Shown here: positions 32,447 to 47,235 of the stretch, one piece after another | How the letters are laid out: every line of letters starts with the position of its first letter | Numbering within the stretch: position 1 is the stretch's first letter | IMG/VR virus record: IMGVR_UViG_3300031857_000002 | Coordinates: 124,001 to 188,000 of that record | DNA length: 64,000 nt | Strand: one strand, 5' to 3' | Translations under genes and position numbers: made by a program | The notes under the pieces: generated by a model | Database searches by the model: none | What the model saw: the letters and a program-made list of their open reading frames with translations, nothing else | What the model was told of the DNA's origin: nothing

Positions 32447-33092
32447 AGACTTGTCGTTGGTTCATGTAATCAACTAAGGTCTGTGCCCAGGCGGCATGCG
32501 CATCTTCATTGTAGTGTTGCCAGCCAGGTGTGATTTCTTCAAACTCATGTTCCACACAGTAGTTGATATAGCAAAGATTTTGCTGGTAAGGATGGAAAAA
32601 GCATTCGTCCCAGTCCAGTTGTTCGGCTGTGTTAGCAACCTGGAACGCATTGAACGCATTGAAAAACAAGTGCGGAATGCCACGCTCTTTGAGAATCAAG
32701 TGCAGGTTATAGATCTTGTTGTGCCAGTAGTAGCCCATCACACGATGCCACTCGCCTTCTTTCTGAATGTGATTTTTCCAGAACTGATATCGTCGGCGAA
32801 ACTCTTCAGGAATACGCTGACCAACATCCAACTGATTGATCTCGTGGAAAGCACCTTCAAAATACCATTGCTCACGACCATGCTCAGTCCACCCAATCAC
32901 CACAAGGTCCGGCTTGTTATCTTTAAGATACTCAAGTGTGGAATTGTAGATCAAGTCGTTGCTAGCACCACTCACTGATAGGTTAGTGCCTGTTCCGCCA
33001 AGATGTCTTGATATCTCACCAATCATGCTACGGCTGCGGTCTTGCAACTCCTCGCCATTCATGTTGGAGTCACCGTTAAACAGTATGTTCAT
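32424..33092 (-). CDS. SGNH/GDSL-like protein (tandem paralog)
   Basis: NGDSN, SGASN, HYNEDAH. Confidence 0.6.
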   Translation of the reverse strand: MNILFNGDSNMNGEELQDRSRSMIGEISRHLGGTGTNLSVSGASNDLIYNSTLEYLKDNKPDLVVIGWTEHGREQWYFEGAFHEINQLDVGQRIPEEFRRRYQFWKNHIQKEGEWHRVMGYYWHNKIYNLHLILKERGIPHLFFNAFNAFQVANTAEQLDWDECFFHPYQQNLCYINYCVEHEFEEITPGWQHYNEDAHAAWAQTLVDYMNQRQVYDSICKR

Positions 33093-33561
33093 TTTTAAGT
33101 ACCTTTAGAGTTTCAGCATGTGCCACACGCTTACGCAGGCTTGAGCTAGAGAAAGAGTGATCTCGACCATTGAATACTAGTTCAATTCCACGCTCACTAC
33201 CTTCCCATCTTCCAGTAAACTCTTTGTCAGCATATTCTACTCCTAGAATTCGAACGTCCAATGGTAGAATTAGCAAGAGGTCAATAAGGTCTTGTTCAGT
33301 TTGGTACACCACAACTTCGTCCACATAGCGACAGGCTGCAAGTTGAATCTGTCGTTCTACAATACTTTGTATAGGTTTGTTCTTGGTATCAGGTCTATCA
33401 ATTGTGGGATCAGTTTGTAGTCCACAGATCAAGTAATCGCAGTGATTTTTAGCTTCGCTTAACATGGCAACATGGCCAGCATGCAACATGTCAAAGGTTG
33501 AGAATGTGATGCCGATCTTTTTGCCTTGTGCTTTTAGTTCTTTGATGTGATTGAAAATCAT
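33076..33561 (-). CDS. cytidylyltransferase-family protein (TagD-like)
   Basis: STFDMLHAGH (HxGH), YVDEV, R.H.FSSS. Confidence 0.8.
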   Translation of the reverse strand: MIFNHIKELKAQGKKIGITFSTFDMLHAGHVAMLSEAKNHCDYLICGLQTDPTIDRPDTKNKPIQSIVERQIQLAACRYVDEVVVYQTEQDLIDLLLILPLDVRILGVEYADKEFTGRWEGSERGIELVFNGRDHSFSSSSLRKRVAHAETLKVLKNEHTV

Positions 33562-33953
33562 GACACTTCACTCCTGCCGTTGCCAATGTCTTTACTCTGC
33601 ACCCAGATACCCGAGTTCTTGATCGCTTGCTCTTGTTCCCAAGTTTCCATAACAACGTGCCTGCACACATTCTGAAACCACTGGTCCACAATGTCTGCAT
33701 CTACTTTGCCTTGGTAGCCGGCCTTGATCAATCTAGCAACAAAGATATCATTCCAGTCTAGTTCAAACGCACCTTGATGTAGATTATTAAGATCCACATC
33801 CATGCCCAGCACAGCCACATACGGCTCGCCAGCTTCAGTAGCCAATTGCTTGGCTGTTTTTTCAGGAGCCTTGACTTTGGGAGTAGATGGCGTCTTGGCT
33901 TCTACAGGCTTTGCTTCCTTCTTGGGCTTTAAGAATCTATCAAACAAGCCCAT
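33558..33953 (-). CDS. hypothetical phage protein
   Basis: GEPYV..FELDWN..IVDQWF. Confidence 0.65.
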   Translation of the reverse strand: MGLFDRFLKPKKEAKPVEAKTPSTPKVKAPEKTAKQLATEAGEPYVAVLGMDVDLNNLHQGAFELDWNDIFVARLIKAGYQGKVDADIVDQWFQNVCRHVVMETWEQEQAIKNSGIWVQSKDIGNGRSEVS

Positions 33954-34798
33954 TATTTGCCCCAGCCATTGCCCCAAAGATCAACGTGTAATCTTGGGCT
34001 ATACCAGTAACCACGCTTGAGTGCTTCGTCTGCAACATTAATACGATTGCCATCGTACACACTGACAACACCACCTACGGGCATTACAAACACAGGACCT
34101 GCAAACTGTGCGAGTCTATATTCATCCACTGCACGATCCAGCTCGTCAAAGTCTTGAACTTTCTCAACCACAAACTTGAGATAAGTTATGCCATATGTTT
34201 CGAGATCAAAAATAATCTCTGGCTTGATTGCCTCTTCCCACTTCTCGCCCGACACACTTAGCTTGGGACTTACTGAGAATGTGATCTCACCGTGCCAGTT
34301 GCTCAGGTACAGTTTGAAGTCTCTTGATAGTTCTTGAGTACCATTGGTCTCAAATGTAATGTGACGCAGGCCACGTTCATGCAGTTTGTCCAGCAATGCA
34401 GGATACGCACGTTGCCACCCCAACAAAGGCTCACCGCCTGTGATAACCAAGTGTACAGGATTGCCATTGGGTTGTTGCCAGTTACCGTTGGGCAATAGTG
34501 CTGCCATCTTTTCCACTAGTTCATCTTCTGTGTAGGTAGGGCTGAGTTCTTTAAATGCAGGATGCCATGACGCATAGCTGTCACAGCCTGTGCTAACAAG
34601 AGGCAGCTCTTCAAATGTCTTGTAGAGATGCACACTCTTGGCAACTTCATCTGCTTCCAACGATGCCTCGCCTGGCTTGCAACCAAACCCCGAGCAGGTA
34701 AAGTTGCAACCAAACATGCGAAGGAACACGCTGGGAACACCAACGTAACGACCTTCGCCTTGTGCTGAATAGAATAGTTCTGATACTTTAAATTTCAT
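33953..34798 (-). CDS. queE: 7-carboxy-7-deazaguanine synthase (radical SAM)
   Basis: ELFYSAQGEG..GVPSVFLR..GCN, CDS, TGGEP, ETNGT, SPKL, RLH. Confidence 0.9.
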   Translation of the reverse strand: MKFKVSELFYSAQGEGRYVGVPSVFLRMFGCNFTCSGFGCKPGEASLEADEVAKSVHLYKTFEELPLVSTGCDSYASWHPAFKELSPTYTEDELVEKMAALLPNGNWQQPNGNPVHLVITGGEPLLGWQRAYPALLDKLHERGLRHITFETNGTQELSRDFKLYLSNWHGEITFSVSPKLSVSGEKWEEAIKPEIIFDLETYGITYLKFVVEKVQDFDELDRAVDEYRLAQFAGPVFVMPVGGVVSVYDGNRINVADEALKRGYWYSPRLHVDLWGNGWGK

Positions 34799-35463
34799 AA
34801 TCTTGTTACCTTTGTCATTCCTGTACGGTTAGGATCTTTATTTAGATTGATACTCTGCTCGTGCATTATAACACGAGTGTTTTGTTTTGTCACCCATCCC
34901 GGCAACACAACATCTAAATAGGCTAAATGCTCTGCAGGCGTAGGATGCGGATCTTGTCGATCAGGCCACCCTTCGGGATGCAATACCTTTTGGTAGCTGG
35001 GCAGAACACTATCAATTACATCTTGATACAAATCAATCACGTCTGAGTCACCGTCAAAGTTTGCCATGCTCATGAATTTCCATCTGATGTTGCGATGTTC
35101 TAGCAATGTTTTTATTGATTTAATATATGCTAGGTCTCTTATAAGGTACCCACGAGAGTCAACATGTGTTGTAAGATACTCTTTATCATAGATAGGACAA
35201 GTAAACATGTTGCCTAGCGTGTGCCATCTACCTTGTGCATATCGATCATCTCTGTGTACTGTAGTCCAACAAACAACTACAGTATCATTTGGACCAAATT
35301 GTGTTCGCTGATCGGCCTCTATAATACTGTTAAAGATGTAGCTGTTGCCAGCACCACTTTGTCCCCAATTTTCAACTGTGTCAAACTCAGGTTCTAAACA
35401 GTCAACCCAGGTACTCCAACGATAGTTAGTAAAACTACATCCAAATGCAAACAGTCTACTCAA
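34795..35463 (-). CDS. SGNH-like protein
   Basis: FGCSFT, GAGN, DPHPTPAEH. Confidence 0.55.
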   Translation of the reverse strand: MSRLFAFGCSFTNYRWSTWVDCLEPEFDTVENWGQSGAGNSYIFNSIIEADQRTQFGPNDTVVVCWTTVHRDDRYAQGRWHTLGNMFTCPIYDKEYLTTHVDSRGYLIRDLAYIKSIKTLLEHRNIRWKFMSMANFDGDSDVIDLYQDVIDSVLPSYQKVLHPEGWPDRQDPHPTPAEHLAYLDVVLPGWVTKQNTRVIMHEQSINLNKDPNRTGMTKVTRL

Positions 35464-36248
35464 ATTTTTCTTGCTTTAACTAACAAATGCCAGCCCAGAT
35501 ATTCTCTCACAGCCTGTCGATGTGACTCTGTCATGGCTTCAAACCAAGGTTCTAACTCGTAACGGCCTTCTTTGTACGCATCTACATTATACATAAAGCA
35601 ATGATCCTGACGGAGGCGTTCGATGTACCAGCCGTTGTCGCTGTTCATCAATTGGTGGATTTCATCTTTGCTGAATGCCTGTGCGTATGGACACCCTGCT
35701 TGTGCTTCAAATTGGTCAAGACCCTTTTGAATCATGGCATACTTCCAGGAGTTCTTGGCGTATACCATGTATCGGAATTCGCCACCATGCTTGACCACCT
35801 CATGTACATTGTCAATGATTTTGTCAATGCCTGGAAAGTGATGGATTACACCATAACTGTACACAAGATCAAACTCACCTAGTTTGGCAAGTGCTACTCC
35901 ATCAGTTGCATCTACATTGTAGAACTCGCCTTCAAGGCCTAGTGTTTCGAATCGTTGCTTGCTTAGTGCAATACTTTGATCGCTGAGATCAATGCCCACA
36001 TACTCAGCACCGTGTTTGGCAAACTCTTCGGCATCCGAACCAATCCCGCAGCCAATTTCCAACACACGTTTACCAGCCCACAAGTGAAACCCCGCAAACT
36101 CAGCAATGTGCGGCTCTACACGATAACGACGTTCGCTTACTTCTCGAAAGAACTCGGGTGTGCCTATGTCGCTTTGACCGTGCTTGATGTTGCACGGCTG
36201 TGTGTTCCAGTAGCGTTTAATACGCTCTTCAAGACTTAGTTGTTGCAT
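35460..36248 (-). CDS. class I SAM-dependent methyltransferase
   Basis: VLEIGCGIG, GIDLS, FDLVYSYGVIHH. Confidence 0.85.
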   Translation of the reverse strand: MQQLSLEERIKRYWNTQPCNIKHGQSDIGTPEFFREVSERRYRVEPHIAEFAGFHLWAGKRVLEIGCGIGSDAEEFAKHGAEYVGIDLSDQSIALSKQRFETLGLEGEFYNVDATDGVALAKLGEFDLVYSYGVIHHFPGIDKIIDNVHEVVKHGGEFRYMVYAKNSWKYAMIQKGLDQFEAQAGCPYAQAFSKDEIHQLMNSDNGWYIERLRQDHCFMYNVDAYKEGRYELEPWFEAMTESHRQAVREYLGWHLLVKARKI

Positions 36249-37116
36249 TTTGTTTTTCTGCTTCCTGTTGACGTGCCTTTTCAGCAAAGTGGCTGTGAGG
36301 ATTTTTAAACTGCACCATTTGTTTGTTGACATCATTCAATGCCAACTTTTCCCAAGGATCTTGTGTGCCACGGAAGATGTTGGCAAAGAAACTCATATCT
36401 TGACCAAGTTCTGTTTCAAGATACTGTGCTATTTTTGCACAGTCTGTGTGACGAACATCCATTTGCTGTACACTGTGAAAGTCTCGGGGATCTCGGGGAT
36501 TGCCTTCTAACATGGGACGATTTTGGAATGTTTCGTCTCCATTGTTGCCTGTAAGGTCATGGCGGTCATGCAATACATTAACTGGAATACGTTCCCAGAT
36601 GTCCAGCATGTAAGCCTGTTGACTTAACCATGCATCAGAGATTTGATGCGGGCTCAAGTATCCCAACAAGTCCAACCACTTGCGAGGCACAATAGGGAAG
36701 ATACTATAAGGATGATCATTGTGTGTATGAAAGGCCAACAGCTTGAACTCACCTTCGTGAATCATGATCTCTTGATCCCAGGCACCTGTTTCCATCACAG
36801 CATCATCGTTCCAGAATACCAACCAACGGGCATCACTTTTGCGAGCTAGTTCATTCACATATTCATTGAGACGAATGTATCCTAGTGGATTGAACGTCAT
36901 AGCAGTGTAGTTTACCTTGTGTTCGTCCAACCAAGGCTGTAGCTCATCAACGAAACATTGTGTGCCCACATCATCGTCGTTGTCAAACCCAAACATGATT
37001 TGAATACGACTTGGGTCAGCCGCTAGTTCAATCACGCTTTTTACACTGCGTTCCAGTGAGTCTGATCGCCCACGAGTGGGCAACAAGATTGCAATATCAA
37101 ATTCAGGTGTTGTCAT
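36229..37116 (-). CDS. GT2 (GT-A) glycosyltransferase
   Basis: ILLPTRGR, FDNDD, WNDD. Confidence 0.75.
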   Translation of the reverse strand: MTTPEFDIAILLPTRGRSDSLERSVKSVIELAADPSRIQIMFGFDNDDDVGTQCFVDELQPWLDEHKVNYTAMTFNPLGYIRLNEYVNELARKSDARWLVFWNDDAVMETGAWDQEIMIHEGEFKLLAFHTHNDHPYSIFPIVPRKWLDLLGYLSPHQISDAWLSQQAYMLDIWERIPVNVLHDRHDLTGNNGDETFQNRPMLEGNPRDPRDFHSVQQMDVRHTDCAKIAQYLETELGQDMSFFANIFRGTQDPWEKLALNDVNKQMVQFKNPHSHFAEKARQQEAEKQNATTKS

Positions 37117-37667
37117 TCAAATAAATCCTCATTCCATTCTCTGTGGCCTTCTCTAAACGCCATGTTTGCTTGTGTTTCACGTACTTCCACTCGGTAGCAC
37201 CACAGGCGTTGTGCTTCGCCCTCGCCCCAAAAGTCTGGAATGTAAACACCGTTCACATACTTGTACAGCATGTCAGCAAGTGATTCACATCCTACTCTGG
37301 GCAAGATTGTAAGTTTGGCCAGTTTGCGACGTTCCATCTCTTTGTAAAATTCAAGTTCAGGATCATCGGCGCTGACCAGGGTTGTGTGATCAAATTGATC
37401 TTCTAAAATTTTCTTGAGTTCTTTCAAGCCGCCATAGTCAGCGGCCCAGTTGCGAACATCAAGGTCGTTTGTACCAAAGTAAAACTTCATTGAGAAACTG
37501 TAACCATGATTCAAGTTACAATGACTGTCGGCCCTCCATTGACGATAAGCACAAGGAAATGCGTCAATGTACTCTTTGGTACTGGTAAACTTGTATTGAA
37601 CAGGTCCGCGATATGGAAGGTTTTGCTCCATGTGTTTAATTAGATCCTGAGTTGATGATAGTGCCAT
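37113..37667 (-). CDS. queD: 6-carboxy-5,6,7,8-tetrahydropterin synthase
   Basis: SHCNLNHGY, DYGGLK, QFDH, GCE, VRET. Confidence 0.85.
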   Translation of the reverse strand: MALSSTQDLIKHMEQNLPYRGPVQYKFTSTKEYIDAFPCAYRQWRADSHCNLNHGYSFSMKFYFGTNDLDVRNWAADYGGLKELKKILEDQFDHTTLVSADDPELEFYKEMERRKLAKLTILPRVGCESLADMLYKYVNGVYIPDFWGEGEAQRLWCYRVEVRETQANMAFREGHREWNEDLFE

Positions 37668-37674
37668 TATTATT

Positions 37675-37745: not shown

Positions 37746-37753
37746 ATCATTAC

Positions 37754-38155
37754 TTATGCTGGCTTTGTGTAACCACTAGCTTTATAGTTGGCCTGTCCGT
37801 GGATCACGCCTCGAACACCGCCAATGGGATTGGCACAATCTCCTACCCGTCGTGGAATCAAGTGTATGTGTGGATACATCACAGTTTGACCTGCTGCCTC
37901 GCCGCAGTTGATACCCACGTTGTAGGCTTCCCACTCGCCGGTTACCACTTTGTGATGACCAAAACGGAAAGCATACTTCAAGGCTTCTTCGATAATTTCA
38001 TTCTTGTTCCACCGTGGCACAAACAACAAATGTCCCTTGGCCACTGGGTAAGCATCACGGAACACAGCCACATGATAGTCTGAATGCTCTGTGGCCTCAT
38101 CTGACCATGGTGCGGCACCTGCTGCCGCTGCCTCTTCTAGTGTTTCATATCTCAT
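37754..38155 (-). CDS. HIT-family hydrolase
   Basis: DAYPVAKGH, AAGQTV..PHIHLIPR. Confidence 0.9.
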   Translation of the reverse strand: MRYETLEEAAAAGAAPWSDEATEHSDYHVAVFRDAYPVAKGHLLFVPRWNKNEIIEEALKYAFRFGHHKVVTGEWEAYNVGINCGEAAGQTVMYPHIHLIPRRVGDCANPIGGVRGVIHGQANYKASGYTKPA

Positions 38156-38964
38156 CTTGGGGCAAACTCCTGTTGTAATTTAATGTTGTCAAAAAACTCT
38201 TTCTTCACAGACGGATCAGTCTTAAAAGCACCTTTGAGCACTGTGGTCTGTGTGAGACTAGAGTGTGCCATAATGCCGCGATTCTCACAACATCCATGTG
38301 TGGCCTGAATGTACACTGCTACGTTTTCGGAGTCAGTAGCTTTACTAATCTCACGGGCAATGTCGTTACAAAGTTCCTCCTGGAGAGTTCCTCGTCTAGC
38401 GCACCATTGAGCGATTCGGGTATACTTACTAAGACCAATAAGTGTATTGGCAGCAATAATGCCAATATAAGCAACGCCAGCCACAGGTTGGTGATGATGG
38501 CTACACATACTGCGCAACTCACTACGTACAACCAACATACCCTCATAACGATCCGCCGAATCATTTGGAAACGCTGTGGCGTCAGGTCCTGGTTCATATC
38601 TACCCTCCATAATTTCATTGAAGTACATTTTAGCAAGTCGTCTTGCTGTGCCATGCGAGTTTGGATCTGTTTCTCGATCAATTAGCAAGCGGTCAAGCAC
38701 CAGTTCAAACGCTTCAGTTGCTTCATCTATAAGGGTATGTTTCATCTCTTCCGAAACATAATCACTAATGTTGTCGCCTGCCCAAAAACGTTTGTTATCA
38801 CGTTTCATCTTGGTACGAATGGCATCTGCTAGATACCCTTCTTTGTAGCCCTTGTCGCTCATGTCCTTGCCGGCTTTTTCAATTGCGCTTTGATGGGCAT
38901 GGGGGATAAATGTGTTTTTTGAATCCGTATGTATAACAGGATCTGGAATAAAGTCTTTTGTCAA
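38152..38964 (-). CDS. folE: GTP cyclohydrolase I
   Basis: SMCSHH, GLSKYTR, LQE, HGCCENRG. Confidence 0.92.
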   Translation of the reverse strand: MTKDFIPDPVIHTDSKNTFIPHAHQSAIEKAGKDMSDKGYKEGYLADAIRTKMKRDNKRFWAGDNISDYVSEEMKHTLIDEATEAFELVLDRLLIDRETDPNSHGTARRLAKMYFNEIMEGRYEPGPDATAFPNDSADRYEGMLVVRSELRSMCSHHHQPVAGVAYIGIIAANTLIGLSKYTRIAQWCARRGTLQEELCNDIAREISKATDSENVAVYIQATHGCCENRGIMAHSSLTQTTVLKGAFKTDPSVKKEFFDNIKLQQEFAPR

Positions 38965-39036: not shown

Positions 39037-39810
39037 TTAGAAAATTTTACTAACAAAATTTTTTTCTAGTAGACAAGGAATTAAAATTTCTTGGGTCCAT
39101 TGACAATGACATTCAGGGGTAGGATGACTGTCATTTGGTATCCATTGGTTTGTTGTTCTCATAAAGTTGCCTAATGTAAGTTCATCTTCAATGTCAAAGT
39201 ATTGAGTAACTTTTTTAGTCAGTGGTGTTTGTATTAGATCAAATTCCCAGTTTGGGTAGTAAAAATTTGTAAACACATACGAGAAGTTTTTTTCAATAAG
39301 ATATGATCGAAGTGCTAGTATTTTAAGAATGCTCTCGTATACCTGTGCTGTAGGTGATACCACTCGTTTATAAATTTTACATAAATCTTCTTGTAACTTT
39401 CCACGCCGTGATTCCAATGGCTGGTTGAAAATACTTAATGTTGAAAAAGTGTTATCAAAATTATAGTTTGATGACCAATGATAATCTTTGGTCATGTCTG
39501 TGGTGGCAATAACGTCAGTTCTTTGCAGCGAGCTCCACATGATAACCACCAGCGTCGATTCACTGTTGATGTTTTCGTTGAGTTCAATCTCATTGATAAT
39601 GCTGTTAAAAATATGATTTGTTCCGGCACCTGATTGAGACGTATCGTATACTTCTTCAAACCCGCAAAGATCTCTAAGATAGTATGGCCAGGTCTGTTGT
39701 TCATTATTGTCGGGATTAAAAGTAAAACTGCAACCGCCAACAAGTACATTTTTAAATCTCGATAGGTGAGTAGCCGGCAGATGTCTACTAATATTTCTGG
39801 TATGACTCAT
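39037..39810 (-). CDS. SGNH-like protein (AT-rich)
   Basis: GGCSFT, SGAGT, DSHPTPECH. Confidence 0.55.
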   Translation of the reverse strand: MSHTRNISRHLPATHLSRFKNVLVGGCSFTFNPDNNEQQTWPYYLRDLCGFEEVYDTSQSGAGTNHIFNSIINEIELNENINSESTLVVIMWSSLQRTDVIATTDMTKDYHWSSNYNFDNTFSTLSIFNQPLESRRGKLQEDLCKIYKRVVSPTAQVYESILKILALRSYLIEKNFSYVFTNFYYPNWEFDLIQTPLTKKVTQYFDIEDELTLGNFMRTTNQWIPNDSHPTPECHCQWTQEILIPCLLEKNFVSKIF

Positions 39811-40400
39811 ATGATAGTTATTTTTCTGCAATCTGGATAATCAACATGTATTGGCTTTGGCCGATTTACCTTCACCCCTTCTAGCAAGGCAAGTCCTTGA
39901 ATGGCTTCTTCGATGGTGGGTTTGTAGTGGTAACCAACTCGGAACACCTGTTGTGATTCCCATGGCTTGATGGTTAAATCTCTGCCGTCGTAGCGTTGAG
40001 CCAACATGGTATCGTATGCTTCGACATCATCTAACAAGATGGCACCACCACGCCCGATATGTAATGGCTTGCCATGGCCAAAACTCAAACAGGTCAATGT
40101 ATCTGGACGATACATATCTTGTTCGAGTCTGCGAGCACTATCCCAAATGCGAGTTTCAAGTATGGGATATTCGCCAACCCAACGTTGCCAGGCATGATCA
40201 AGATATTCATACTCAATGCCCAACTTGTGCATGGTCATTGGTATACTTAAATACGTGTAAGGTTGCATCTTGCAGTGTTTGACCTGATCATATCGCAAAC
40301 ACAGCTCAATGGCATGAGTACAGCAATCAGTCATGATTGCATATGGTGCACCGGTAAACTCTGCTAGAGCTCGTTCAAACTGCAGGATTTTATCGAACAT
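39807..40400 (-). CDS. short DegT/DnrJ/EryC1/StrS-family PLP aminotransferase
   Basis: FERALAEFTGA, CTHAIEL, DSA, SFGHGKPL..GRGG. Confidence 0.75.
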   Translation of the reverse strand: MFDKILQFERALAEFTGAPYAIMTDCCTHAIELCLRYDQVKHCKMQPYTYLSIPMTMHKLGIEYEYLDHAWQRWVGEYPILETRIWDSARRLEQDMYRPDTLTCLSFGHGKPLHIGRGGAILLDDVEAYDTMLAQRYDGRDLTIKPWESQQVFRVGYHYKPTIEEAIQGLALLEGVKVNRPKPIHVDYPDCRKITII

Positions 40401-41337
40401 ACCATTTCCAGGCATGAGTGATCATGTCGTCTAGCGTGTACTTTTGCCAGTCTTTGTATACTTGTCCAAACTTGTCTGCGCTAGCAGTTAACACAGCCGG
40501 ATCGCCAACACGCTTGTTGCCAACTACTACTTTTAACTGACGTCCTGTAATGCGTGTGGCTGCCTTGATAATCTCTGCATTGCTAGTGCCTTGGTTGGTT
40601 CCAAGATTGTACACACCGGGCGCAAGATTATCGTACAACGCACTCACGTGCGCATCGGCAATGTCTTGTACGTGAACATAATCACGTACACAGGTACCAT
40701 CTTCGGTGGCATAGTCAGTGCCATACAATGTAAATGGGGTGTTGTCTCGCAAACTTTCTAGTACTCGAGCAATAATATGTGTAGCACCTGGCTCTTGTCC
40801 ATGTCGAGCTTGCATGTCTGCACCACACGCATTAAAGTATCGGAATGCCACGTAGTCTAAGTTGTATGCTTTATGATAACTTTCCAACATCATCTCAACC
40901 ATGAGCTTGCTTTCTCCGTAAGGACTAACAGGCTCAGTGGGATCAACTTCGTGACAAGGAGGCATAATTGGTTCACCATACACAGCCGCTGAGGAACTGA
41001 AAATAAATCTAACTTTAGGCAAGGCCTGCACAATAAAGTTCAGCAAGTTCATGGTCTTGGCCACGTTGTTACCGTAGTATTCTGATGGCTTCTTGATGCT
41101 AGGACCAACCAAGCTAGTACCTGCACAATGCACAATGGCGTTGGGCTGGGTGTCTAACAATTTCTTGTAGGCAATATCGCTGTCAAAGTCGGCTTGAAGA
41201 AAGTTATCAAGTTGTCCTACTTGATGCTTTTGCAAAGGTCTACGGTCAATACCTATAACAGTATGTCCTGCGCCTTTTAACTGCAAGGCAATTTGTCCGC
41301 CAATGTAGCCGGCGACGCCTGTGACTATTACATTCAT
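40390..41337 (-). CDS. galE: UDP-glucose 4-epimerase
   Basis: TGVAGYIG, SSSAAVYG, YGESK, RYFNACG, DGTCVRDYVHV. Confidence 0.9.
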   Translation of the reverse strand: MNVIVTGVAGYIGGQIALQLKGAGHTVIGIDRRPLQKHQVGQLDNFLQADFDSDIAYKKLLDTQPNAIVHCAGTSLVGPSIKKPSEYYGNNVAKTMNLLNFIVQALPKVRFIFSSSAAVYGEPIMPPCHEVDPTEPVSPYGESKLMVEMMLESYHKAYNLDYVAFRYFNACGADMQARHGQEPGATHIIARVLESLRDNTPFTLYGTDYATEDGTCVRDYVHVQDIADAHVSALYDNLAPGVYNLGTNQGTSNAEIIKAATRITGRQLKVVVGNKRVGDPAVLTASADKFGQVYKDWQKYTLDDMITHAWKWYVR

Positions 41338-42536
41338 TCTTCAATCTTTACAACTTGATATTTCTCATGCGCAACATGATCACGATAGCGATTGCCTGCA
41401 CGATTCCACTGCTCGCCTTGACCAGTCATGATATCGATCACACGATCAATAGTGCCGTTGTTCCAGTCTGAGATAAGTCCCATGTTGTGATGTGGCTTGT
41501 GCAACATGTTTTGCATTTTGTGATAGGCATCATCAATTGACCAAGGCACATACAAGCGTTCTGGATCATTGGCAAAAGTCTCTGGGAAACTTCTGTAAGC
41601 AGGGAACACCACGTTTGCACCAAGTGTATCTGCTTCGCTTACAGTATTGCTTACCCAGTCTTGTAGCGCACAGTTGAACAACACACGGGTGTCATTGAGC
41701 AGAGCATAATAATCGTTCTTGCTGAGGTTTTCGTAGATCTTGAGCTTGCCTTCTCGTTCCAGTTGTCTAGCACGAGTAATGAACTCTGGATTGTTGCTAC
41801 GCAACGGGCCGCCTTGGAAAATAGCAAATTCACATGGTTGGTTAGTCAATTGCCCATACATCTCAATCAAGTCCATGAAGAAACCTGGCTGCTTTTCTTG
41901 ATCAAACCGTGCGGCAAATCCCACACGACGTGGACGTTGATCAAATGGCTTTATGTTCTCCGCACCGCCAATGCGTTCTAACACTTCTTCCTTGCCAAAT
42001 GCTAAGCCACTAATATTATATATAGGAGCACGCCATCCAGCAATGCGCATATGAGCAACCATCTCTTCGTTTGTGGCAAGAACTCCATCCACGAACTCAT
42101 TAACCATTTGTTCGTAGAGTCCCATCCATTTTGCCATACCCCATACGTGTACGAAGTCATCAGGATCAATGGACTGAGCAAGACAGCGCACATACACGCA
42201 AGGACGTTGATCAGCAGGAACCTGATTAAGGATATAGGGTAAACTCTCAATACCGGGTTGAAACATGTCTTCAAAGTAGATAACATCCGCACTTGTGATC
42301 TCTCCGTTCTTCATCATCTGAACTAGATTCATCATCTGGCTCATGCTAAAATAACTGCGTCCATGTGCGTCCAGCACCTGTCCTACTGAAATAGCTTGGC
42401 TATTGTCAATAGTGGTTCCGGGAACATACACAACGTCAAGACCTCTACGGTCAAACACACGCCGATTCCACTCAGTGAGCTGTAGTGTGTAACGGGCTTC
42501 ATAGCTCTCTAAGCCCATGTAAAACAGCTTTCTCAT
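41334..42536 (-). CDS. GT-B (GT4-like) glycosyltransferase
   Basis: FAARFDQEKQP, QDWVSNTVSEA, YRSFPE. Confidence 0.7.
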   Translation of the reverse strand: MRKLFYMGLESYEARYTLQLTEWNRRVFDRRGLDVVYVPGTTIDNSQAISVGQVLDAHGRSYFSMSQMMNLVQMMKNGEITSADVIYFEDMFQPGIESLPYILNQVPADQRPCVYVRCLAQSIDPDDFVHVWGMAKWMGLYEQMVNEFVDGVLATNEEMVAHMRIAGWRAPIYNISGLAFGKEEVLERIGGAENIKPFDQRPRRVGFAARFDQEKQPGFFMDLIEMYGQLTNQPCEFAIFQGGPLRSNNPEFITRARQLEREGKLKIYENLSKNDYYALLNDTRVLFNCALQDWVSNTVSEADTLGANVVFPAYRSFPETFANDPERLYVPWSIDDAYHKMQNMLHKPHHNMGLISDWNNGTIDRVIDIMTGQGEQWNRAGNRYRDHVAHEKYQVVKIEE

Positions 42537-42760
42537 GCTGGGCGATATCCTGCGAAGCGTCGAGCATCTTCCCACCACATGTTCTTGGCATTCTTGCCCA
42601 GCATCCATTTGTTGAACTGCTGGAATGCATAACTTTTAAAGTTATACAAGTCCGCTTCATTATAGCGGTAACCAAAGTCTTGGCAGAACTCCAAGTACTT
42701 TTCGAGGTCCTCGTAGATCTCAGTCACACGTGGATTGGATTTAATTGTAGGCTTGGCCAT
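42533..42760 (-). CDS. hypothetical phage protein
   Basis: AAGGA RBS; ATGA overlap with the glycosyltransferase. Confidence 0.65.
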   Translation of the reverse strand: MAKPTIKSNPRVTEIYEDLEKYLEFCQDFGYRYNEADLYNFKSYAFQQFNKWMLGKNAKNMWWEDARRFAGYRPA

Positions 42761-42770
42761 ACTTTTCCTT

Positions 42771-43214
42771 TTAATTTACAATTGATAAACTTGGACGAGA
42801 AATTTCATATTTAATCAAAGCGCCGTTCTCGCCATCCTCGGCCACTTCAATCCAGACCGCACGGTCAGGATACCTTTGAGCAATCTGTAGATACAGATCG
42901 TCAGAGATCATTTCACAACTTTTGAAGTTGAGTTCTAGTGTTCCACCAGCATAGAGTTTTTCTAACCAGCGTTTGAACTGAATAAATTCAATGTCTCGAT
43001 CATTATGAAACACGTCAATCCACACACGGAAATGAAAGATGTGTCTATGCGGCACACCAAGAAAACTCACGTCATACTCATCGCCTGTTGCTAGTGCAGG
43101 ATCAGTTGCGGCAGCAGGGTATTTGTGTATGCCTTCTTTGCGGAATGTAACCCAGATTTTTCTATCTGCATATTGTTTAATTCTGTTAATTTTTTCTCGT
43201 TGCTCTTGATTCAT
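42771..43214 (-). CDS. dpdL: DpdL-like T-fold protein (putative CDG decarboxylase)
   Basis: LGVPHRHIF fits the LxxxHRHxF motif as I recall it for DpdL; DRDIEF, SCEM, EDGENG; in the folE/queD/queE/dpdA cluster. Confidence 0.65.
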   Translation of the reverse strand: MNQEQREKINRIKQYADRKIWVTFRKEGIHKYPAAATDPALATGDEYDVSFLGVPHRHIFHFRVWIDVFHNDRDIEFIQFKRWLEKLYAGGTLELNFKSCEMISDDLYLQIAQRYPDRAVWIEVAEDGENGALIKYEISRPSLSIVN

Positions 43215-43257
43215 GTGTTACCTTTGGTTAGAACATAGTGTATAATACTACAAATAA

Positions 43258-44436
43258 TCATGTTTGTCTATGGGTGTATATGTCCGAAAACACTGTGCGA
43301 CTATCCAGATGCCTGCGTTGGTCAAGTTCTGCCAGTCGATTAAACAGACTGTGATACCCGTTGTCTACTACAGGCACATCCAAACAGTCTAGAACAAACT
43401 GTAGTTCTTGATCAAATCTAGTACCTGTGGGTTTTCTGGCAGCAATAATCTCTTTGACTTCTGCAATGTACGAAGCTGGCAGTGCCCTGGCATCACACCA
43501 GATAAACTGATGCCCGTTGTTGATATAGGCAAGATTTAGATGATCGTAATCACGTGCATGGCCGTTGTCTAGCAAGAAATCAACATAGTTCCAAATGGTC
43601 TTGGCATTGAGTGCAGAGAACACCATGTTGAATTTGACCTTGTGTGTTACAGGGATTGTGGACTTGAGTATGTCTAAGTTTTCAGCAAATACTGACCAAT
43701 CGCCTGGATAGCGAATATAATTGTATCTGTCGCCCATGTCTTCGGCACTAACCAACCAATCTACATTGGGAAACTTGGTCAGTAGCTCAAAGATTCTATT
43801 GCCGCGAATCATGCTGAGATTGGTGTTTACAATAAGATGACAATGTGGATTAATCTCAAGTAACTTTTCTAATATCACTTGATTTTCTTTGATCAACAGT
43901 GGCTCACCTCCGGCCATGTAGATCTTGCGCAGATCGGCTGCATTGTCCACAAAGTACTGCGTGACATCTGCAATAGCACTTTCGTCAATTTTGACAAACT
44001 GCTTTAGTTCGCTGGCCCAGGTTGAACTTAGATCAGGACCGCAATAAACACAGCCATAGTTACAAGTATTTCTAAATCTCAAGTCAGCATACTGTAGTTT
44101 AAAGTTTTTGGGTTGATCAAAAAATGCTTTGTCTGGTTGCCATGTATCAAACTCAACCAATTGATTGTCTCTATGATACTTACGACCTTCGTCAACGTTG
44201 TCTCCGGGTGCATAACAAACCTTACAGCCTTGAGCTCGTTGGCCAGACAGCATCTCTTGTTTGATCTGAATATTCTTGTTGCCGCCTACAATATTTTGTA
44301 GTTTGGTCTCGTGCAAATTACCAAGATTGTTATGAGCAATACAACAACTGTCTACCCTGCCGTCAGTTTCTACATAGATACTGCCCCAAGGTAGTGGGCA
44401 AAATGCATCATTGTTCCAGTATTGCTCTTGGTTCAA
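43258..44436 (-). CDS. radical SAM protein with N-terminal SPASM/twitch-like Cys motif
   Basis: CPLPW..DGRVDSCC; CNYGCVYC; AGGEP; NTNLS. Confidence 0.85.
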   Translation of the reverse strand: MNQEQYWNNDAFCPLPWGSIYVETDGRVDSCCIAHNNLGNLHETKLQNIVGGNKNIQIKQEMLSGQRAQGCKVCYAPGDNVDEGRKYHRDNQLVEFDTWQPDKAFFDQPKNFKLQYADLRFRNTCNYGCVYCGPDLSSTWASELKQFVKIDESAIADVTQYFVDNAADLRKIYMAGGEPLLIKENQVILEKLLEINPHCHLIVNTNLSMIRGNRIFELLTKFPNVDWLVSAEDMGDRYNYIRYPGDWSVFAENLDILKSTIPVTHKVKFNMVFSALNAKTIWNYVDFLLDNGHARDYDHLNLAYINNGHQFIWCDARALPASYIAEVKEIIAARKPTGTRFDQELQFVLDCLDVPVVDNGYHSLFNRLAELDQRRHLDSRTVFSDIYTHRQT

Positions 44437-44942
44437 AGTGTTTGGTCCTTGGTGTATTTAGACCAATCAGTAAACACTGAACGTTTTTGTAATGTGTGTA
44501 GACTATGGCACCACACACCGGGATTGGTTGCCGCAAAGTCTTTGTCATCTATTTTAATAGTGGCATTGTACCCTAGTTGTCGTATGTAAGGTATTTTGAC
44601 AGAAATCATGGGAATAAAATTATTGTGTTCACACAGCCCAGATTCTAACAGTCCTTCCACTTGAGAAACATCAATGTCAAAGGTACACCAATAGCCTGCA
44701 TCCAACCATTGTTGAATCATTTGTTCCCAAGGTGTCCAGAACACACTATCGTTGGTGCGTATACTTGACGGAAAGCTCATGTTGGCACCAAAGTAAATGT
44801 GCTCACAATCGGCTAGTTGATTTTTTATGTCTGTTGCGGATTGTAATCCTACTACAAATAACGTTTTTATACCAAATGCCGGAGTATGTTCTACTTCTGT
44901 TCCGGTAAAGAACTTGACGTTGTTATGGCCTTCTCTATTCAT
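44433..44942 (-). CDS. hypothetical protein coupled to dpdA
   Basis: FFTGTEVEHTPA, HIYFGAN, KIDD..F.ATNPGVW; overlaps the dpdA stop. Confidence 0.65.
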   Translation of the reverse strand: MNREGHNNVKFFTGTEVEHTPAFGIKTLFVVGLQSATDIKNQLADCEHIYFGANMSFPSSIRTNDSVFWTPWEQMIQQWLDAGYWCTFDIDVSQVEGLLESGLCEHNNFIPMISVKIPYIRQLGYNATIKIDDKDFAATNPGVWCHSLHTLQKRSVFTDWSKYTKDQTL

Positions 44943-46513
44943 AGCTGTTCCTGTTCCAGTTGATCTAATGCTGTGGTGTCTAATTGTACACTATCATCGG
45001 ATTCAGTGTCAACTTCTGGCTCATCAAAACTGAACAATGCTTTGAACTGTGTACGAGCATTCTTGGCTTTTTTGCCTTTGAAGCCACGAGTGCCCACAAT
45101 CTCCATCCAGTATGAATCATACTGTTCAATTATGGCTTCAGCAGTGTCTCGATCTGGTGCCGCAAAGATTGCTTCCACAATGTCCTCAAACTTGGCATAG
45201 TCTCCACCTTGACGTTGCATCATGGCAGGACGAGATCCTGCATCAAAGCGTCGATTGGCTTCTTGTACCGCAGTCAAGTGCATCCAAACATTGTGACCCA
45301 TAAGCAAAGCATATGAGAATGAATCCCAAGATGTTTTGCCTTCTTTGCCAATTTTATTAAGGTCACCTGGTTTGTAGATGCAGATGTCTTTCATCTTGAA
45401 CAAGTTGCTTAGTGGACTGTCTTCCCAGCGTGGATACACCCCGTCGGCTATTACTCCGTCACTCCACTTGCGTGTGTCTGTGGCGTATTTTTTGTCGTCG
45501 GCTGAAGGAGCCATGCGATACGACCACTTGGAGTCGTGTTCGTAGACATTTTCAAAATACACTTGTCCGTTGGCGGTTGCAAGGAACGGACTGGCGCAGT
45601 CAAACGAGATAGTGAATTGCGGGTTGACATATTTTCTTACGGCTCTCTGGATTACAGTTAATAAAACGGCCCACTCCAACTTGGAGGTGCCCAAGAAGTG
45701 CATCCAATCATGGCGGCCCTCTTGTAGTAGATTGTCGTAGCGCAAGGCTACCAGGCGCCGGAGCACCAAGTGTACATCGCACATGTTTTGTCCGCCCATG
45801 CCCCAGCCATCAAAGTGACGATCTGGGTACACAGCAGGGTCGCAGAAGTGTTTCATTTGCTGATACCATTCTTCTGCTGACGTATGGTTATCACCTTGTA
45901 GCACATTTAAGAAACGTGCGCCACCTTGATCTTTGCCCTTGCGGTGCTTGATAAAGTATTCATTGTTGAACTTGGTGGCTGCCACTGCTTCGTCTAGTGT
46001 TTTGATCTGACAAGCATCCGATGCTTTCTTGTCATGGATAACCCATGTGGGAATATCCAGGCCCATGCCATAGTTAGAAATAGTGTCCAACCAAGTCAAC
46101 ACAGATTCACGTTTCTTTTGTGCTTTGGCGCAACCTGAGTTGGCTTTCCAGTCACCTTCCCACAAGCCCTTGGCAATCTGGAATCCACCAGAGTCACCAA
46201 GCATGATAGTGTTGGGATCACGATTACGAACCATGTCCTCTGACCAGTCCGGCTTGGTCAAGTCCAAGTTAGCATGACCACCAGAATACAGTGACCATTT
46301 GTATGGGAACAATGCTTTCTGACTGTTGAGCCAGTTCATTTGTTCCATGTCTGTAAGACCTTGCGGCAATCTAGCAGGATCTACATATGGTCCATTTACA
46401 GGATCACGTTGCTTGCCCACAAACGTGGCGTAGAAGCCAGAGATAGCCGGAAGGAACACAGCATAGTCGTTCTGCTTGGCAGTTAAGTTGTCTTGAACTA
46501 CAGTCTCGGTCAT
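44939..46513 (-). CDS. dpdA: TGT-like DNA transglycosylase DpdA (7-deazaguanine insertion)
   Basis: GDSGGFQ, LDIP, NVLQG, HFLG, SFDCAS, HN motifs of the TGT/DpdA fold. Confidence 0.8.
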   Translation of the reverse strand: MTETVVQDNLTAKQNDYAVFLPAISGFYATFVGKQRDPVNGPYVDPARLPQGLTDMEQMNWLNSQKALFPYKWSLYSGGHANLDLTKPDWSEDMVRNRDPNTIMLGDSGGFQIAKGLWEGDWKANSGCAKAQKKRESVLTWLDTISNYGMGLDIPTWVIHDKKASDACQIKTLDEAVAATKFNNEYFIKHRKGKDQGGARFLNVLQGDNHTSAEEWYQQMKHFCDPAVYPDRHFDGWGMGGQNMCDVHLVLRRLVALRYDNLLQEGRHDWMHFLGTSKLEWAVLLTVIQRAVRKYVNPQFTISFDCASPFLATANGQVYFENVYEHDSKWSYRMAPSADDKKYATDTRKWSDGVIADGVYPRWEDSPLSNLFKMKDICIYKPGDLNKIGKEGKTSWDSFSYALLMGHNVWMHLTAVQEANRRFDAGSRPAMMQRQGGDYAKFEDIVEAIFAAPDRDTAEAIIEQYDSYWMEIVGTRGFKGKKAKNARTQFKALFSFDEPEVDTESDDSVQLDTTALDQLEQEQL

Positions 46514-47235
46514 TACTTGCTTTGTGCTGGTAAGAGATAGTTGTAAACAGCAACCCCTGAGTCTACTGTGATTTGTGCAACGCCATCATCGCTAATGCGA
46601 ATTGTTTTGTCACCAACCAAGTCCATGATGCTGGCAAATTGTTTGGCTGGATAACTCCACGCACGTTTTAATTGACCTGTAATGTCTGATTGAAACACAA
46701 AGTTGCCAGCGTGTGTAGAGTGATCACCAAAGTAAAACTTCAAGTCTGTGCCATCAGTTTTGACTTGAAAGTTTGGCTCTTCTGCGTTGGCACTCATTTG
46801 CATTTTCAGTCTCATGATGCTGGCAACTGCAGGCTCGAACTCAATGTGCCATGGCACAGATTTCATTCTAGCAGTTTTTAATTTCTCGCTAACAACACCC
46901 GATGTCATAAATCGATAGTTGTTTTTAAAGTCGCCTGTTTTGTTCACAAAGTCAATGCCATCTGGCTCTGTGGGTGTTTTGCGTGTGATAGTAAGTTTGG
47001 CATCTTCTTTATACTCTTGCAAGTTAAGCAAGGTTTTGAGTTTGCTCAAGTTGGGCATACCAAATGTACCAACAAAGTCGGGCACTGGATTTTTGTATTC
47101 GCCTTTGACGATCACGCTCAAATCTTCTGCCAGGCCCTCAATTTGTGTAGTGTTCTCATCGCCTACAATCTTGATCAGGTCAATGCAACCAAGATCATAT
47201 GTGTGTTGTACCAAGTCTAATAGACAGTCTCTCAT
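46513..47235 (-). CDS. probable sliding clamp (gp45-like)
   Basis: ~240 aa, FGMPNL.KL motif, beta-rich C-terminus; next to the DNA polymerase. Confidence 0.55.
   Translation of the reverse strand: MRDCLLDLVQHTYDLGCIDLIKIVGDENTTQIEGLAEDLSVIVKGEYKNPVPDFVGTFGMPNLSKLKTLLNLQEYKEDAKLTITRKTPTEPDGIDFVNKTGDFKNNYRFMTSGVVSEKLKTARMKSVPWHIEFEPAVASIMRLKMQMSANAEEPNFQVKTDGTDLKFYFGDHSTHAGNFVFQSDITGQLKRAWSYPAKQFASIMDLVGDKTIRISDDGVAQITVDSGVAVYNYLLPAQSK

Follow-up and report, generated by a model that had tools for sequence, protein, structure and literature searches.

A 7-deazaguanine DNA-modification gene cluster with a dedicated glycosyltransferase gene in a freshwater jumbo phage

INTRODUCTION

Among the closest known systems to the locus described here is that of Cellulophaga phage phiST, which encodes FolE, QueD, QueE, DpdL, and DpdA3 next to its replication genes (Hutinet et al., NAR 2023, PMC10516641). 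FolE, QueD, and QueE make 7-carboxy-7-deazaguanine (CDG) from GTP, and DpdL, recognized by an LxxxHRHxF signature, is the proposed CDG decarboxylase that yields 7-deazaguanine (DG). The phiST pathway is QueC-less, and the DNA of phiST is plain dDG (100%). Acidovorax phage ACP17 dpdL plus dpdA alone gave no dDG in E. coli, and the authors suggested that other enzymes may be needed (PMC10516641), though the phiST dpdA/dpdL pair also failed in E. coli. The DNA of Pseudomonas jumbo phage PA5oct (Wroclawvirus) resists cleavage at G-containing restriction sites and carries a modified G that has not been identified (PMC12191111).

Sugars attached to modified bases are found in other settings. T4 α- and β-glucosyltransferases and the mammalian queuosine glycosyltransferases (QTMAN/GTDC1) are GT-B fold enzymes that place a sugar on an already modified base within a nucleic acid, though their acceptors carry a hydroxyl group, in hmC or in the cyclopentenediol of Q. 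In the secondary metabolites huimycin and dapiramicin (Kutzneria, Streptomyces), a FolE/QueD/QueE-type deazapurine pathway, proceeding through QueC and preQ0, is combined with a glycosyltransferase and a methyltransferase, and the sugar is N-linked to the 2-amino group of a 7-deazaguanine base (PMC7439116).

Here, we examine a window of 64,000 nucleotides (positions 124,001 to 188,000 of IMG/VR record IMGVR_UViG_3300031857_000002) from a freshwater jumbo phage. A sequence-only reading had noted a QueC-less deazaguanine cluster with a DpdL-like gene and interleaved sugar-transfer genes. It had inferred a possible new glycosylated deazaguanine or a second sugar-modified base, while allowing that the sugar genes could instead modify virion or cell-surface glycans.

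RESULTS

We first asked whether the genes of the proposed cluster were present. The observation held in full, with every named gene found on the minus strand at or near the expected position. The features of the region are as follows.

48206-50866 (-), family B DNA polymerase (PolB), right-hand border of the module
47268-48209 (-), 313-aa protein between polymerase and clamp, without assigned function
46513-47235 (-), sliding-clamp-like protein
44939-46513 (-), divergent DpdA/TGT-like DNA transglycosylase (524 aa)
44433-44942 (-), u169, an orphan α/β protein whose start overlaps the dpdA stop
43258-44436 (-), N-terminal-twitch radical SAM protein, an accessory insertion
42771-43214 (-), DpdL, a QueD paralog and proposed CDG decarboxylase
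41334-42536 (-), DpdL-associated GT4-type (GT-B fold) glycosyltransferase (GT)
40390-41337 (-), UDP-hexose 4-epimerase (GalE), whose start overlaps the GT stop
39807-40415 (-), short DegT/DnrJ-like PLP protein (202 aa), overlapping GalE
39037-39831 (-), SGNH/DUF6071-like paralog
38152-38964 (-), GTP cyclohydrolase I (FolE)
37754-38155 (-), HIT-family nucleotide hydrolase/transferase
37113-37667 (-), QueD (CPH4 synthase)
36229-37116 (-), GT2-like (GT-A) glycosyltransferase
35460-36335 (-), class I SAM methyltransferase
34795-35463 (-), SGNH-like paralog
33953-34798 (-), QueE (CDG synthase, radical SAM)
33558-33977 (-), 139-aa protein (u139) syntenic with QueE in jumbo relatives
33076-33561 (-), cytidylyl/adenylyltransferase (RfaE domain II/TagD-like)
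31718-33092 (-), two further SGNH/DUF6071-like paralogs (31718-32446 and 32424-33092), left edge of the inserted block
30718-31737 (-), 5′-3′ exonuclease/RNase H (FEN), left-hand replication border, as in PA5oct

The second radical SAM gene, the HIT gene, and the four SGNH/DUF6071-like paralogs had not been mentioned in the sequence-only reading.

Next, we examined the evidence for the deazaguanine pathway. FolE matched PF01227 above cut-off (1e-38), though NCBIfam FolE models matched below their cut-offs (best 1.2e-38). QueD matched PF01242 (1.7e-14) and a QueD-like PHROG (3e-35), and alignment placed it in the CxxxHGY subtype, as in phiST QueD. QueE matched the QueE-like phrog_2076 (1.5e-53) and was 47% identical to the BUCT-ZZ01 protein annotated as QueE, while hits to five NCBIfam QueE models were all below their cut-offs. 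DpdL reads LGVPHRHIF, which fits the published signature exactly, and was 57% identical to ACP17 DpdL and 33% identical to phiST DpdL, with tblastn also matching others. Alignment of DpdL with the QueDs showed Leu in place of the catalytic Cys. The DpdA-like protein carries GDSGGFQ and SFDCASP motifs and retains both catalytic-aspartate motifs. It was not recognized by Pfam TGT or DpdA models, but hhalign to the ACP17/X1/BUCT-ZZ01 DpdA family gave a probability of 83.6% (E 8e-6), that family in turn matched E. coli TGT at 87% (E 3.7e-6), and Atlas features pointed to viral TGT (0.93) and DpdA (0.88).

We then searched the whole 320-kb genome (CheckV 92% complete), not only the window, for further enzymes. 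QueC, QueF, ArcS/DUF5591, PAPS-reductase-type PP-loop enzymes, PRTase, and ThyA (thymidylate-synthase-type hydroxymethylase) were all missing. Outside the cluster, the genome has no separate glycan island and only one other GT2 gene.

The bordering genes were consistent with insertion into a replication block. PolB matched PF00136 (8.5e-34) and PF03104 (4e-19) and was 50% identical to PA5oct PolB. The clamp-like protein matched phrog_12062 (6e-30), was 33% identical to the PA5oct protein in the same position, and matched by psiblast the Phosso protein annotated as sliding clamp. The 313-aa protein between them gave only a weak Methyltransf_23 hit (0.0075) and is conserved in position within the clade but divergent (mean 47% identity). 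At the other border, the exonuclease matched PF02739 (2e-19). Homologs of u139 lie near QueE in PA5oct, two genes downstream, and in Phosso.

To define the sugar-related genes, we turned first to the GT-B gene, whose true start is M25 of the longer ORF, as the sequence-only reading had assumed. Its AF2 model (pLDDT 93.5) gave VIA Z scores of 25-27 to SPS, MshA, and BshA and a Foldseek E of 3e-12, and a profile search against PDB hit GT4 enzymes. The family, comprising 790 representative clusters, is phage-restricted, with a conserved R..EK donor-phosphate motif and a D-x7-E motif. T4 DNA glucosyltransferases were not among the top 50 structural matches, and we found neither sequence similarity nor preferential structural similarity to them or to the queuosine glycosyltransferases. 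The GT family is acidic, with a median pI of 5.9, though all proteins of this phage are acidic, including its polymerase.

Co-occurrence of this GT and of u169 with the deazaguanine genes had been set out beforehand as a test, and it came out positive for the GT and positive only in part for u169. The GT lies within a few kb of a DpdL gene in about 14 independent lineages. Among cultured phages, these include BUCT-ZZ01, ACP17, Xanthomonas phage X1/BUDD, PA5oct, Phosso, and BCSR5. Of the distant metagenomic representatives (29-32% identity), 7 of 7 with informative context had the GT next to DpdL, on different phage backbones, with three DpdA types and with either FolE or FolE2. The GT profile was specific, hitting PA5oct, Phosso, and BCSR5 but neither six GT-less DpdL phages, among them phiST, nor the GT-rich genome of Flavobacterium phage immuto_2-6A. 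u169 belongs to a family of roughly 150 aa (u150) that accompanies the GT, with homologs in ACP17, inside the cluster, and in PA5oct, 27 kb away. The shared motif G-x-E-V/A-E-G/H...TLF was found beside the GT in 7 lineages and in none of the 6 GT-less DpdL phages. The AF2 model of u169 (pLDDT 85) gave no informative fold match. In BCSR5, a PIG-L/LmbE-type deacetylase gene lies directly upstream of the u150 and GT genes, the same pairing as MshA/MshB and BshA/BshB.

The sugar genes are not all alike. GalE (TIGR01179, 299.7 bits against a cut-off of 262.3) was present downstream of the GT in 122 of 123 clade loci. The DegT-like gene (PF01041 at 1.4e-12, covering only part of the profile; SFGHGK lysine motif present) was present in 115 of 117. 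Both are translationally coupled to the GT by overlapping starts and stops. Outside the clade, however, the short DegT-like family recurs in ordinary phage glycan islands far from deazaguanine genes. One example is immuto_2-6A, where the only 7-deazaguanine derivative quantified in the DNA was fdPreQ1 and no sugar derivative was reported.

The GT2-like gene scored below cut-off for PF00535 (21 bits) but matched the glycosyltransferase phrog_14945 (6.6e-12). It was present in at least 59 of 79 clade loci, and its only GenBank phage homolog is in Pelagibacter phage HTVC008M. The HIT gene (PF01230, 9e-10) was present in 69 of 91 clade loci. Other genes were accessory. The methyltransferase (several Methyltransf Pfam families, 1e-17 to 1e-18) was present in 13 of 66 clade loci, and the radical SAM gene (NF033640, 233 bits against a cut-off of 170) in only 27 of 132, at varying positions and about 38% identity. 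The cytidylyltransferase (PF01467, 5e-12; TIGR02199, 9e-23, below cut-off; HxGH motif present) was likewise accessory. Of the SGNH-like paralogs, those at 39037-39831 and 34795-35463 carry GCSFT, SGAGN, and HPT motifs, seen directly; the former, with a weak DUF6071 hit, was found in 3 of 158 loci and the latter in 19 of 158.

We next compared the locus with its closest relatives. Against phiST, it shares the QueC-less CDG pathway, DpdL, a DNA transglycosylase, and the position next to replication genes. phiST has no member of the GT4 family and no u150 protein, its 259-aa DpdA3 shows no BLAST similarity to the 524-aa protein here, and its cluster instead carries an AAA_18 kinase-like gene and MazG. 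PA5oct has the same order of PolB, clamp, DpdA, GT, DpdL ... QueE, u139-like, and RNase H, with DpdA 35% and DpdL 54-56% identical. It lacks GalE and the DegT-like, GT2, methyltransferase, and cytidylyltransferase genes in the block, and has a purine PRTase and a truncated epimerase there. ACP17 has QueD, FolE, u150, DpdA, GT, DpdL, and QueE in one run, and the GT family, the u150 family, and DpdL are the same as here. ACP17 and X1 have T4-like backbones, a DpdA of another subfamily related to the one here only at the hhalign level, and no nucleotide-sugar genes in the run, and X1 adds a PP-loop PAPS-reductase-like enzyme.

DISCUSSION

Our analysis partly supports the interpretation offered by the sequence-only reading. 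A QueC-less DpdL-type cluster is supported, as is the evolutionary tie of one glycosyltransferase, together with the unknown protein next to dpdA, to DpdL across unrelated phages. Treating the whole sugar set as one unit is not supported, and a second sugar-modified pyrimidine is unlikely. What homology shows is the presence of FolE, QueD, and QueE, the absence of QueC from the genome, so that the preQ0 branch is closed, and the presence of DpdL and of a divergent TGT/DpdA-like transglycosylase. That DpdA swaps G in phage DNA for DG (or CDG), as in phiST, protecting the DNA from restriction, is an inference, as are the glycosylation chemistry and its acceptor.

We consider a dDG pathway extended by a glycosylation step the most likely reading, though our confidence in it is only about even. 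In this view, after DG is made or inserted, the GT would transfer a hexose or N-acetylhexosamine from a UDP-sugar onto the deazaguanine moiety, giving a sugar-bearing dDG. GalE would supply the 4-epimer of the donor in this clade, and the coupled short DegT-like protein would probably tailor it, while the GT2-like, HIT, cytidylyltransferase, methyltransferase, and SGNH genes would either elaborate the sugar further or serve a separate glycan function. The recurrence of the GT next to DpdL, the coupling of GalE and the DegT-like gene to the GT, the deacetylase gene beside the GT in BCSR5, the unidentified modification of PA5oct, the lack of dDG from ACP17 dpdL plus dpdA alone, and the natural occurrence of huimycin and dapiramicin favor this view, though failure of the phiST pair means that the E. 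coli result does not single out the GT. Against it, dDG has no obvious O or N nucleophile in the major groove, and a C-glycoside made by a retaining GT4 enzyme has no known precedent. In addition, phiST makes dDG without this GT, which is therefore not needed for DG itself, and the structural neighbors of the GT are generic GT4 enzymes, many of them acting on small molecules. DegT-like, GT2, and methyltransferase genes elsewhere sit in glycan islands that are not linked to DNA modification.

It remains possible, though less likely, that the cluster makes plain dDG as in phiST and that the sugar genes glycosylate virion proteins, host envelope, or a phage-made glycan, merely sharing an early or middle transcription unit with the modification genes. 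phiST has DpdL and 100% dDG without any GT. The generic GT4 fold would fit, as would the DegT-like, GT, methyltransferase, and epimerase islands of immuto_2-6A and S-SCSM2R, which are not linked to deazaguanine genes. This does not explain, however, why this particular GT family is found only beside DpdL, in about 14 lineages with different replication modules and DpdA types, nor why ACP17, PA5oct, and X1 carry the GT with no other glycan genes, and the genome examined here has no separate glycan island. A more doubtful alternative is that the GT acts on a free 7-deazaguanine or pterin intermediate, in the manner of HuiG on a preQ0 derivative or BGluT on tetrahydrobiopterin. The product would be either a soluble glycoside (a reservoir, a decoy, or an inhibitor of host TGT or of queuosine salvage, for example) or a bulky base that DpdA then inserts. 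Structural neighbors do include the small-molecule enzymes MshA, BshA, SenB, and LmbT and tetrahydrobiopterin glucosyltransferases (Z 23-27), and invariant acidic and aromatic residues in the acceptor domain (D90, D124, D127, F128, and W137) would, by inference, suit a guanine-like ligand. Purine PRTases in the PA5oct and BUCT-ZZ01 clusters show that some steps happen on free bases, and huimycin provides a precedent. Yet BGluT-type enzymes are not closer to this GT than other GT4 enzymes are, and the constant presence of QueE and DpdA argues against a purely pterin end product. Three different DpdA subfamilies would each have to accept a bulky glycosylated base, or else the product would never reach DNA, with no clear benefit to a lytic phage. 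A second, independent sugar-modified base, such as a glycosylated hydroxymethyl-pyrimidine as in T-even phages, is very unlikely. Only the presence of two GTs plus nucleotide-sugar genes next to replication genes favors it, whereas the genome has no thymidylate-synthase-family hydroxymethylase, T4 α- or β-glucosyltransferases were not among the top matches, and the GT tracks DpdL rather than pyrimidine-modification genes.

The region is best explained as a DNA guanine-replacement module inserted into the replication gene block of a freshwater jumbo phage. What is new here is that the adjacent GT4 glycosyltransferase, and with it a small α/β protein of roughly 150 aa, is a dedicated add-on to DpdL-type clusters in many unrelated phages, which points to an undescribed sugar-bearing form of 7-deazaguanine.

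Gene content and the deazaguanine core

We first examined the order of genes across the region. From 50866 down to 30718, a single minus-strand run of tightly packed genes was observed, with the following order (coordinates are those of the window, bases 124001-188000 of a 320-kb IMG/VR virus record).

PolB (-), at the 50866 end
313-aa protein of unknown function (-)
clamp-like protein (-)
44939-46513 (-), 524-aa DpdA-like protein
169-aa protein of unknown function (-), here u169
43258-44436 (-), N-twitch radical SAM protein
147-aa DpdL (-), a QueD paralog and proposed CDG decarboxylase
41334-42536 (-), predicted GT-B glycosyltransferase (GT)
GalE (-)
202-aa short DegT-like protein (-)
39037-39831 (-), SGNH-like protein
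FolE (-)
HIT protein (-)
QueD (-)
GT2-like protein (-)
methyltransferase (-)
34795-35463 (-), SGNH-like protein
QueE-like protein (-)
139-aa protein of unknown function (-)
cytidylyltransferase (-)
32424-33092 (-), SGNH-like protein
31718-32446 (-), SGNH-like protein
RNase H/FEN (-), at the 30718 end

The gene list of the sequence-only reading was correct, and its observation of a QueC-less deazaguanine cluster with interleaved sugar genes was confirmed. Across the whole 320-kb genome, rated 92% complete by CheckV, we found no QueC, QueF or ArcS, no PAPS-reductase-type PP-loop enzyme, no purine PRTase, and no ThyA-type hydroxymethylase. A scan of 32-51 kb for promoters and terminators gave counts that were not above those of shuffled controls, and we therefore claim no operon boundaries.

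We then assessed the individual members of the deazaguanine pathway. FolE and QueD pass their Pfam cut-offs. The QueE-like protein matched the PHROG QueE-like family at 1.5e-53 and is 47% identical to the BUCT-ZZ01 protein annotated as QueE, though all NCBIfam QueE equivalogs scored below cut-off and Pfam Radical_SAM was below its gathering score. QueD has CxxxHGY rather than CxxxHGH, a variant shared with the QueD of phage phiST, the DNA of which is proven to be dDG. The 147-aa protein reads LGVPHRHIF, aligned under the CxxxHG[HY] position of QueD where the catalytic Cys motif lies, and this is the published LxxxHRHxF signature of DpdL. It is 57% identical to ACP17 DpdL and 33% identical to phiST DpdL, and, as it has no Pfam PTPS hit, its kinship rests on these DpdL homologs. 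As expected for DpdL, it is encoded together with FolE, QueD, a QueE-like protein and a DpdA-like protein, without QueC. Decarboxylation of CDG to DG remains a proposed activity, as it has not been demonstrated even for the founding members of the family. In two DpdL phages without the GT, DpdL is annotated as the C-terminal part of a longer protein, of 383 aa in Vibrio phage Bakedbeans (gp176; locus L168, 9212-10363) and 293 aa in MA9V-3 (locus L171, 9431-10312). The N-terminal part of the MA9V-3 protein looks like an HNH endonuclease, and these are either true fusions or annotation artifacts.

The 524-aa protein was not recognized by the Pfam TGT (PF01702) or DpdA (PF23859) models, with no hit at E <= 1, and sequence and profile searches of PDB for both DpdA families returned nothing. 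It does, however, retain GDSGGFQ and SFDCASP, which are invariant in eight homologs and align in register with the two catalytic-Asp motifs of E. coli TGT and with ACP17/X1 DpdA. By hhalign, it matched the ACP17/X1/BUCT-ZZ01 DpdA family at 83.6% probability (E 8e-6), and that family in turn matched TGT at 87%. Language-model features also pointed to viral TGT and DpdA clusters. We therefore treat it as a divergent DpdA subfamily, shared with PA5oct and Phosso, rather than assigning it to DpdA1-4.

A glycosyltransferase family is associated with DpdL

Next, we examined the sugar genes, which fall into different classes. The longest ORF of the GT, 41334-42608 (-), begins 24 codons upstream of the start used by essentially all homologs (400 aa), and the real start is most likely at 42536, leaving a 235-nt gap after dpdL. 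The AlphaFold (AF2) model is confident, with pLDDT 93.5, and shows two Rossmann-like domains in a GT4-type GT-B fold, with VIA Z scores of 25-27 over 320-345 residues to sucrose-phosphate synthase (SPS), MshA, BshA and PglA. An R..EK motif and a D-x7-E motif are conserved, with R210, E214, K215 and D293 invariant and E301 nearly invariant across 46 sequences at 29-58% identity. By analogy with the basic R/K pair and E-x7-E-type motif of GT4 enzymes, we assign these residues to donor binding. Pfam Glycos_transf_1 reached only 16.8 bits against a cut-off of 26.4, and the family profile reached GT4 structures in PDB only at E 2e-4. The T4 AGT and BGT glucosyltransferases were not among the top 50 structural matches, and together with the absence of a ThyA-family gene this provides no support for a T4-type phage DNA glucosyltransferase. 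The net charge or pI of the GT was uninformative as an indicator of DNA binding, because the whole proteome is acidic.

The GT family is large and diverse, with 790 representative clusters at 50% identity. In GenBank phages, its homologs lie beside DpdL in BUCT-ZZ01 (67% identical to this GT), ACP17, X1/BUDD, PA5oct, Phosso and BCSR5. In PA5oct, we had considered the protein between dpdA and dpdL as a radical SAM homolog, but rejected this, as it is a GT homolog. We also drew nine distant metagenomic representatives at 29-32% identity, of which seven had usable context. All seven have a gene with the DpdL motif within 2 kb, and on the longer contigs QueD, QueE and FolE or FolE2 also lie close by. 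These loci sit on T4-like, jumbo and UDG-PolA backbones, with at least three DpdA types. In whole-genome scans, the family profile found the cluster GT in PA5oct, Phosso and BCSR5, but found nothing in phiST, RHph_I1_18, Bakedbeans, Ahp1, D479 or MA9V-3, which are DpdL phages without a GT, nor in immuto_2-6A, which has many other GTs. The association is therefore specific and cannot be explained by shared ancestry of the flanking genome. In three metagenomic loci (L172, L174 and L179), GT, DpdL, QueE and FolE clusters occur in phages whose PolA is fused to, or adjacent to, a UDG domain. As that polymerase type was recently linked to T-modified genomes, some phages may modify both G and T.

The second class is represented by u169, which belongs to a loosely conserved family of about 150 aa (u150) sharing the N-terminal motif G-x-E-V/A-E-G/H...TLF. 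This family lies beside the GT or DpdA in ACP17, X1, BCSR5, three metagenomic clusters and this window, and was not found in the six GT-less DpdL phages. The u169 model (pLDDT 85) has no informative structural relative, as fold searches returned only one unnamed AFDB cluster with no function attached. ESM Atlas gave only weak glycoside-hydrolase-like hints at a score of 0.85, which we did not trust. A complex prediction with residues 1-430 of the DpdA-like protein, the GT and u169 gave no verdict, and is not evidence either way.

GalE and the short DegT-like gene overlap the preceding genes and are present in 122 of 123 and 115 of 117 clade loci, respectively, which fits a role in supplying or tailoring the donor sugar. 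GalE exceeds its equivalog model (TIGR01179, 299.7 bits against 262.3). The DegT-like protein carries the lysine motif SFGHGK, but at 202 aa it matches only part of a profile that describes a fold-type-I PLP domain of about 360 aa, and short homologs of 195-215 aa exist in other phages. Outside the clade, the two genes are not part of DpdL clusters, and the DegT-like family turns up in glycan islands of immuto_2-6A and cyanophage S-SCSM2R. In immuto_2-6A, the only 7-deazaguanine derivative quantified in the DNA was fdPreQ1, and no sugar derivative was reported.

The methyltransferase, cytidylyltransferase, N-twitch radical SAM and SGNH paralogs are accessory or displaced within the clade. The radical SAM gene (NF033640, 233 bits) lies between u169 and dpdL, but only about a fifth of clade relatives have such a gene, at different positions and about 38% identical, so it behaves like a mobile accessory gene. 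A radical SAM gene also sits next to the DegT-like gene in S-SCSM2R. The four SGNH/DUF6071-like paralogs are scattered through the cluster, and their presence varies widely among relatives. Two have Cys where the GDS serine is expected (GCSFT), plus SGAGN and a C-terminal HPT motif.

Lineage-specific additions and distribution of the clade

Other carriers of the GT differ in the genes that surround it. PA5oct has a purine-type phosphoribosyltransferase (PF00156, 2e-11) and a truncated epimerase beside dpdL (PA5oct locus L001, 15425-16389), and BUCT-ZZ01 has an XGPRT between queE and queD and a second GT (PF13692) (BUCT-ZZ01 locus L162, 16303-16764). Some lineages may therefore route the deazaguanine base into the nucleotide pool. 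BCSR5 has a PIG-L/LmbE-family deacetylase immediately upstream of the u150 and GT genes, and a weak PP-loop (PAPS_reduct) protein (BCSR5 locus L167, 11261-13099), while X1 has a clear PAPS_reduct-like PP-loop protein in its cluster (X1 locus L163, 8091-8624). This suggests lineage-specific tailoring, such as HexNAc deacetylation or carboxylate activation.

We also examined how widely the clade is distributed. Using the DpdA-like and GT genes, we found it to be extremely abundant in lake and freshwater metagenomes, with more than 600 IMG/VR loci and at least 8000 candidate protein clusters, of which all 8000 scored were close relatives of the GT. The sequencing runs found were only freshwater DNA runs stored as contigs, with no raw long reads in which modification-induced miscalls might be seen. 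Megablast of the 15-kb region against GenBank phages gave no match, and no cultured member of the clade was found in that collection. A genome-collection scan with a narrow GT alignment found only MAG contigs and no isolate genomes. Copies of the GT at 76-84% identity lie on contigs (L189, L190 and L191) binned into a Haliscomenobacter sp. MAG (two contigs, 39 and 183 kb) and a Chitinophagales MAG, which is either a host hint (freshwater Bacteroidota) or reflects phage contigs binned by mistake.

A postulated glycosylated deazaguanine

From these data, we can postulate a pathway. Homology shows that genes for GTP-to-CDG synthesis are present, that there is no route to preQ0, and that DpdL, a DpdA-type enzyme and an apparently functional GT4 enzyme are encoded. 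It is inferred that DpdL decarboxylates CDG to give DG, that DpdA inserts DG into DNA after replication, and that the GT, perhaps with u169, adds a sugar to the deazaguanine moiety, at either the DNA or the base level. This last step is supported by the strict coupling between the GT and DpdL, by the PIG-L/LmbE-type deacetylase placed directly before the u150 and GT genes in BCSR5, which is the MshA/MshB logic, by the unidentified modified G of PA5oct, and by the failed reconstitution of ACP17 DpdL plus DpdA. Against it, dDG has no obvious acceptor atom in the major groove, the structural neighbors of the GT are generic, and phiST needs no GT to make dDG. Natural N2-glycosides of deazaguanine bases, huimycin and dapiramicin, nonetheless show that such chemistry exists.

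We are highly confident that this is a deazaguanine DNA-modification cluster, and consider it probable that the GT belongs functionally to it, whereas glycosylation of the final DNA base is only a tentative proposal. The interpretation of the sequence-only reading, possibly a new glycosylated deazaguanine or a second sugar-modified base, was supported in part. The system works like the phiST dDG system and is syntenic with PA5oct, but differs from the phiST system in having the GT/u150 add-on and, in this clade, coupled nucleotide-sugar genes. In the literature searched, we found no report of a glycosyltransferase linked to DpdL and none of a glycosylated deazaguanine in DNA.

Eight 7-deazaguanine derivatives are known in phage DNA, and none carries a sugar. 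A bolder possibility, which we hold as somewhat less likely than not, is that in this clade and in PA5oct, ACP17, X1, BCSR5, Phosso and BUCT-ZZ01, guanine in virion DNA is replaced by a 7-deazaguanine carrying a hexose or HexNAc/HexN, installed by a DpdL-locked GT4 enzyme working with a previously unnoticed roughly 150-aa protein. To our knowledge, this would be the first glycosylated purine in any DNA and a ninth or later natural deazaguanine DNA derivative, possibly with an N2- or C-glycosidic link. The DpdL branch is the least understood, as its decarboxylase has never been reconstituted and the authors of that work suspected that enzymes were missing (Hutinet 2023). A glycosyltransferase and a small partner protein locked to DpdL in many lineages provide concrete candidates for those missing components and predict a new base. 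Several carriers are cultured phages, including the therapeutic-candidate phage PA5oct, whose G modification is known to exist but has not been identified. The result also bears on which restriction, Type IV and glycosylase defenses such phages escape or trigger.
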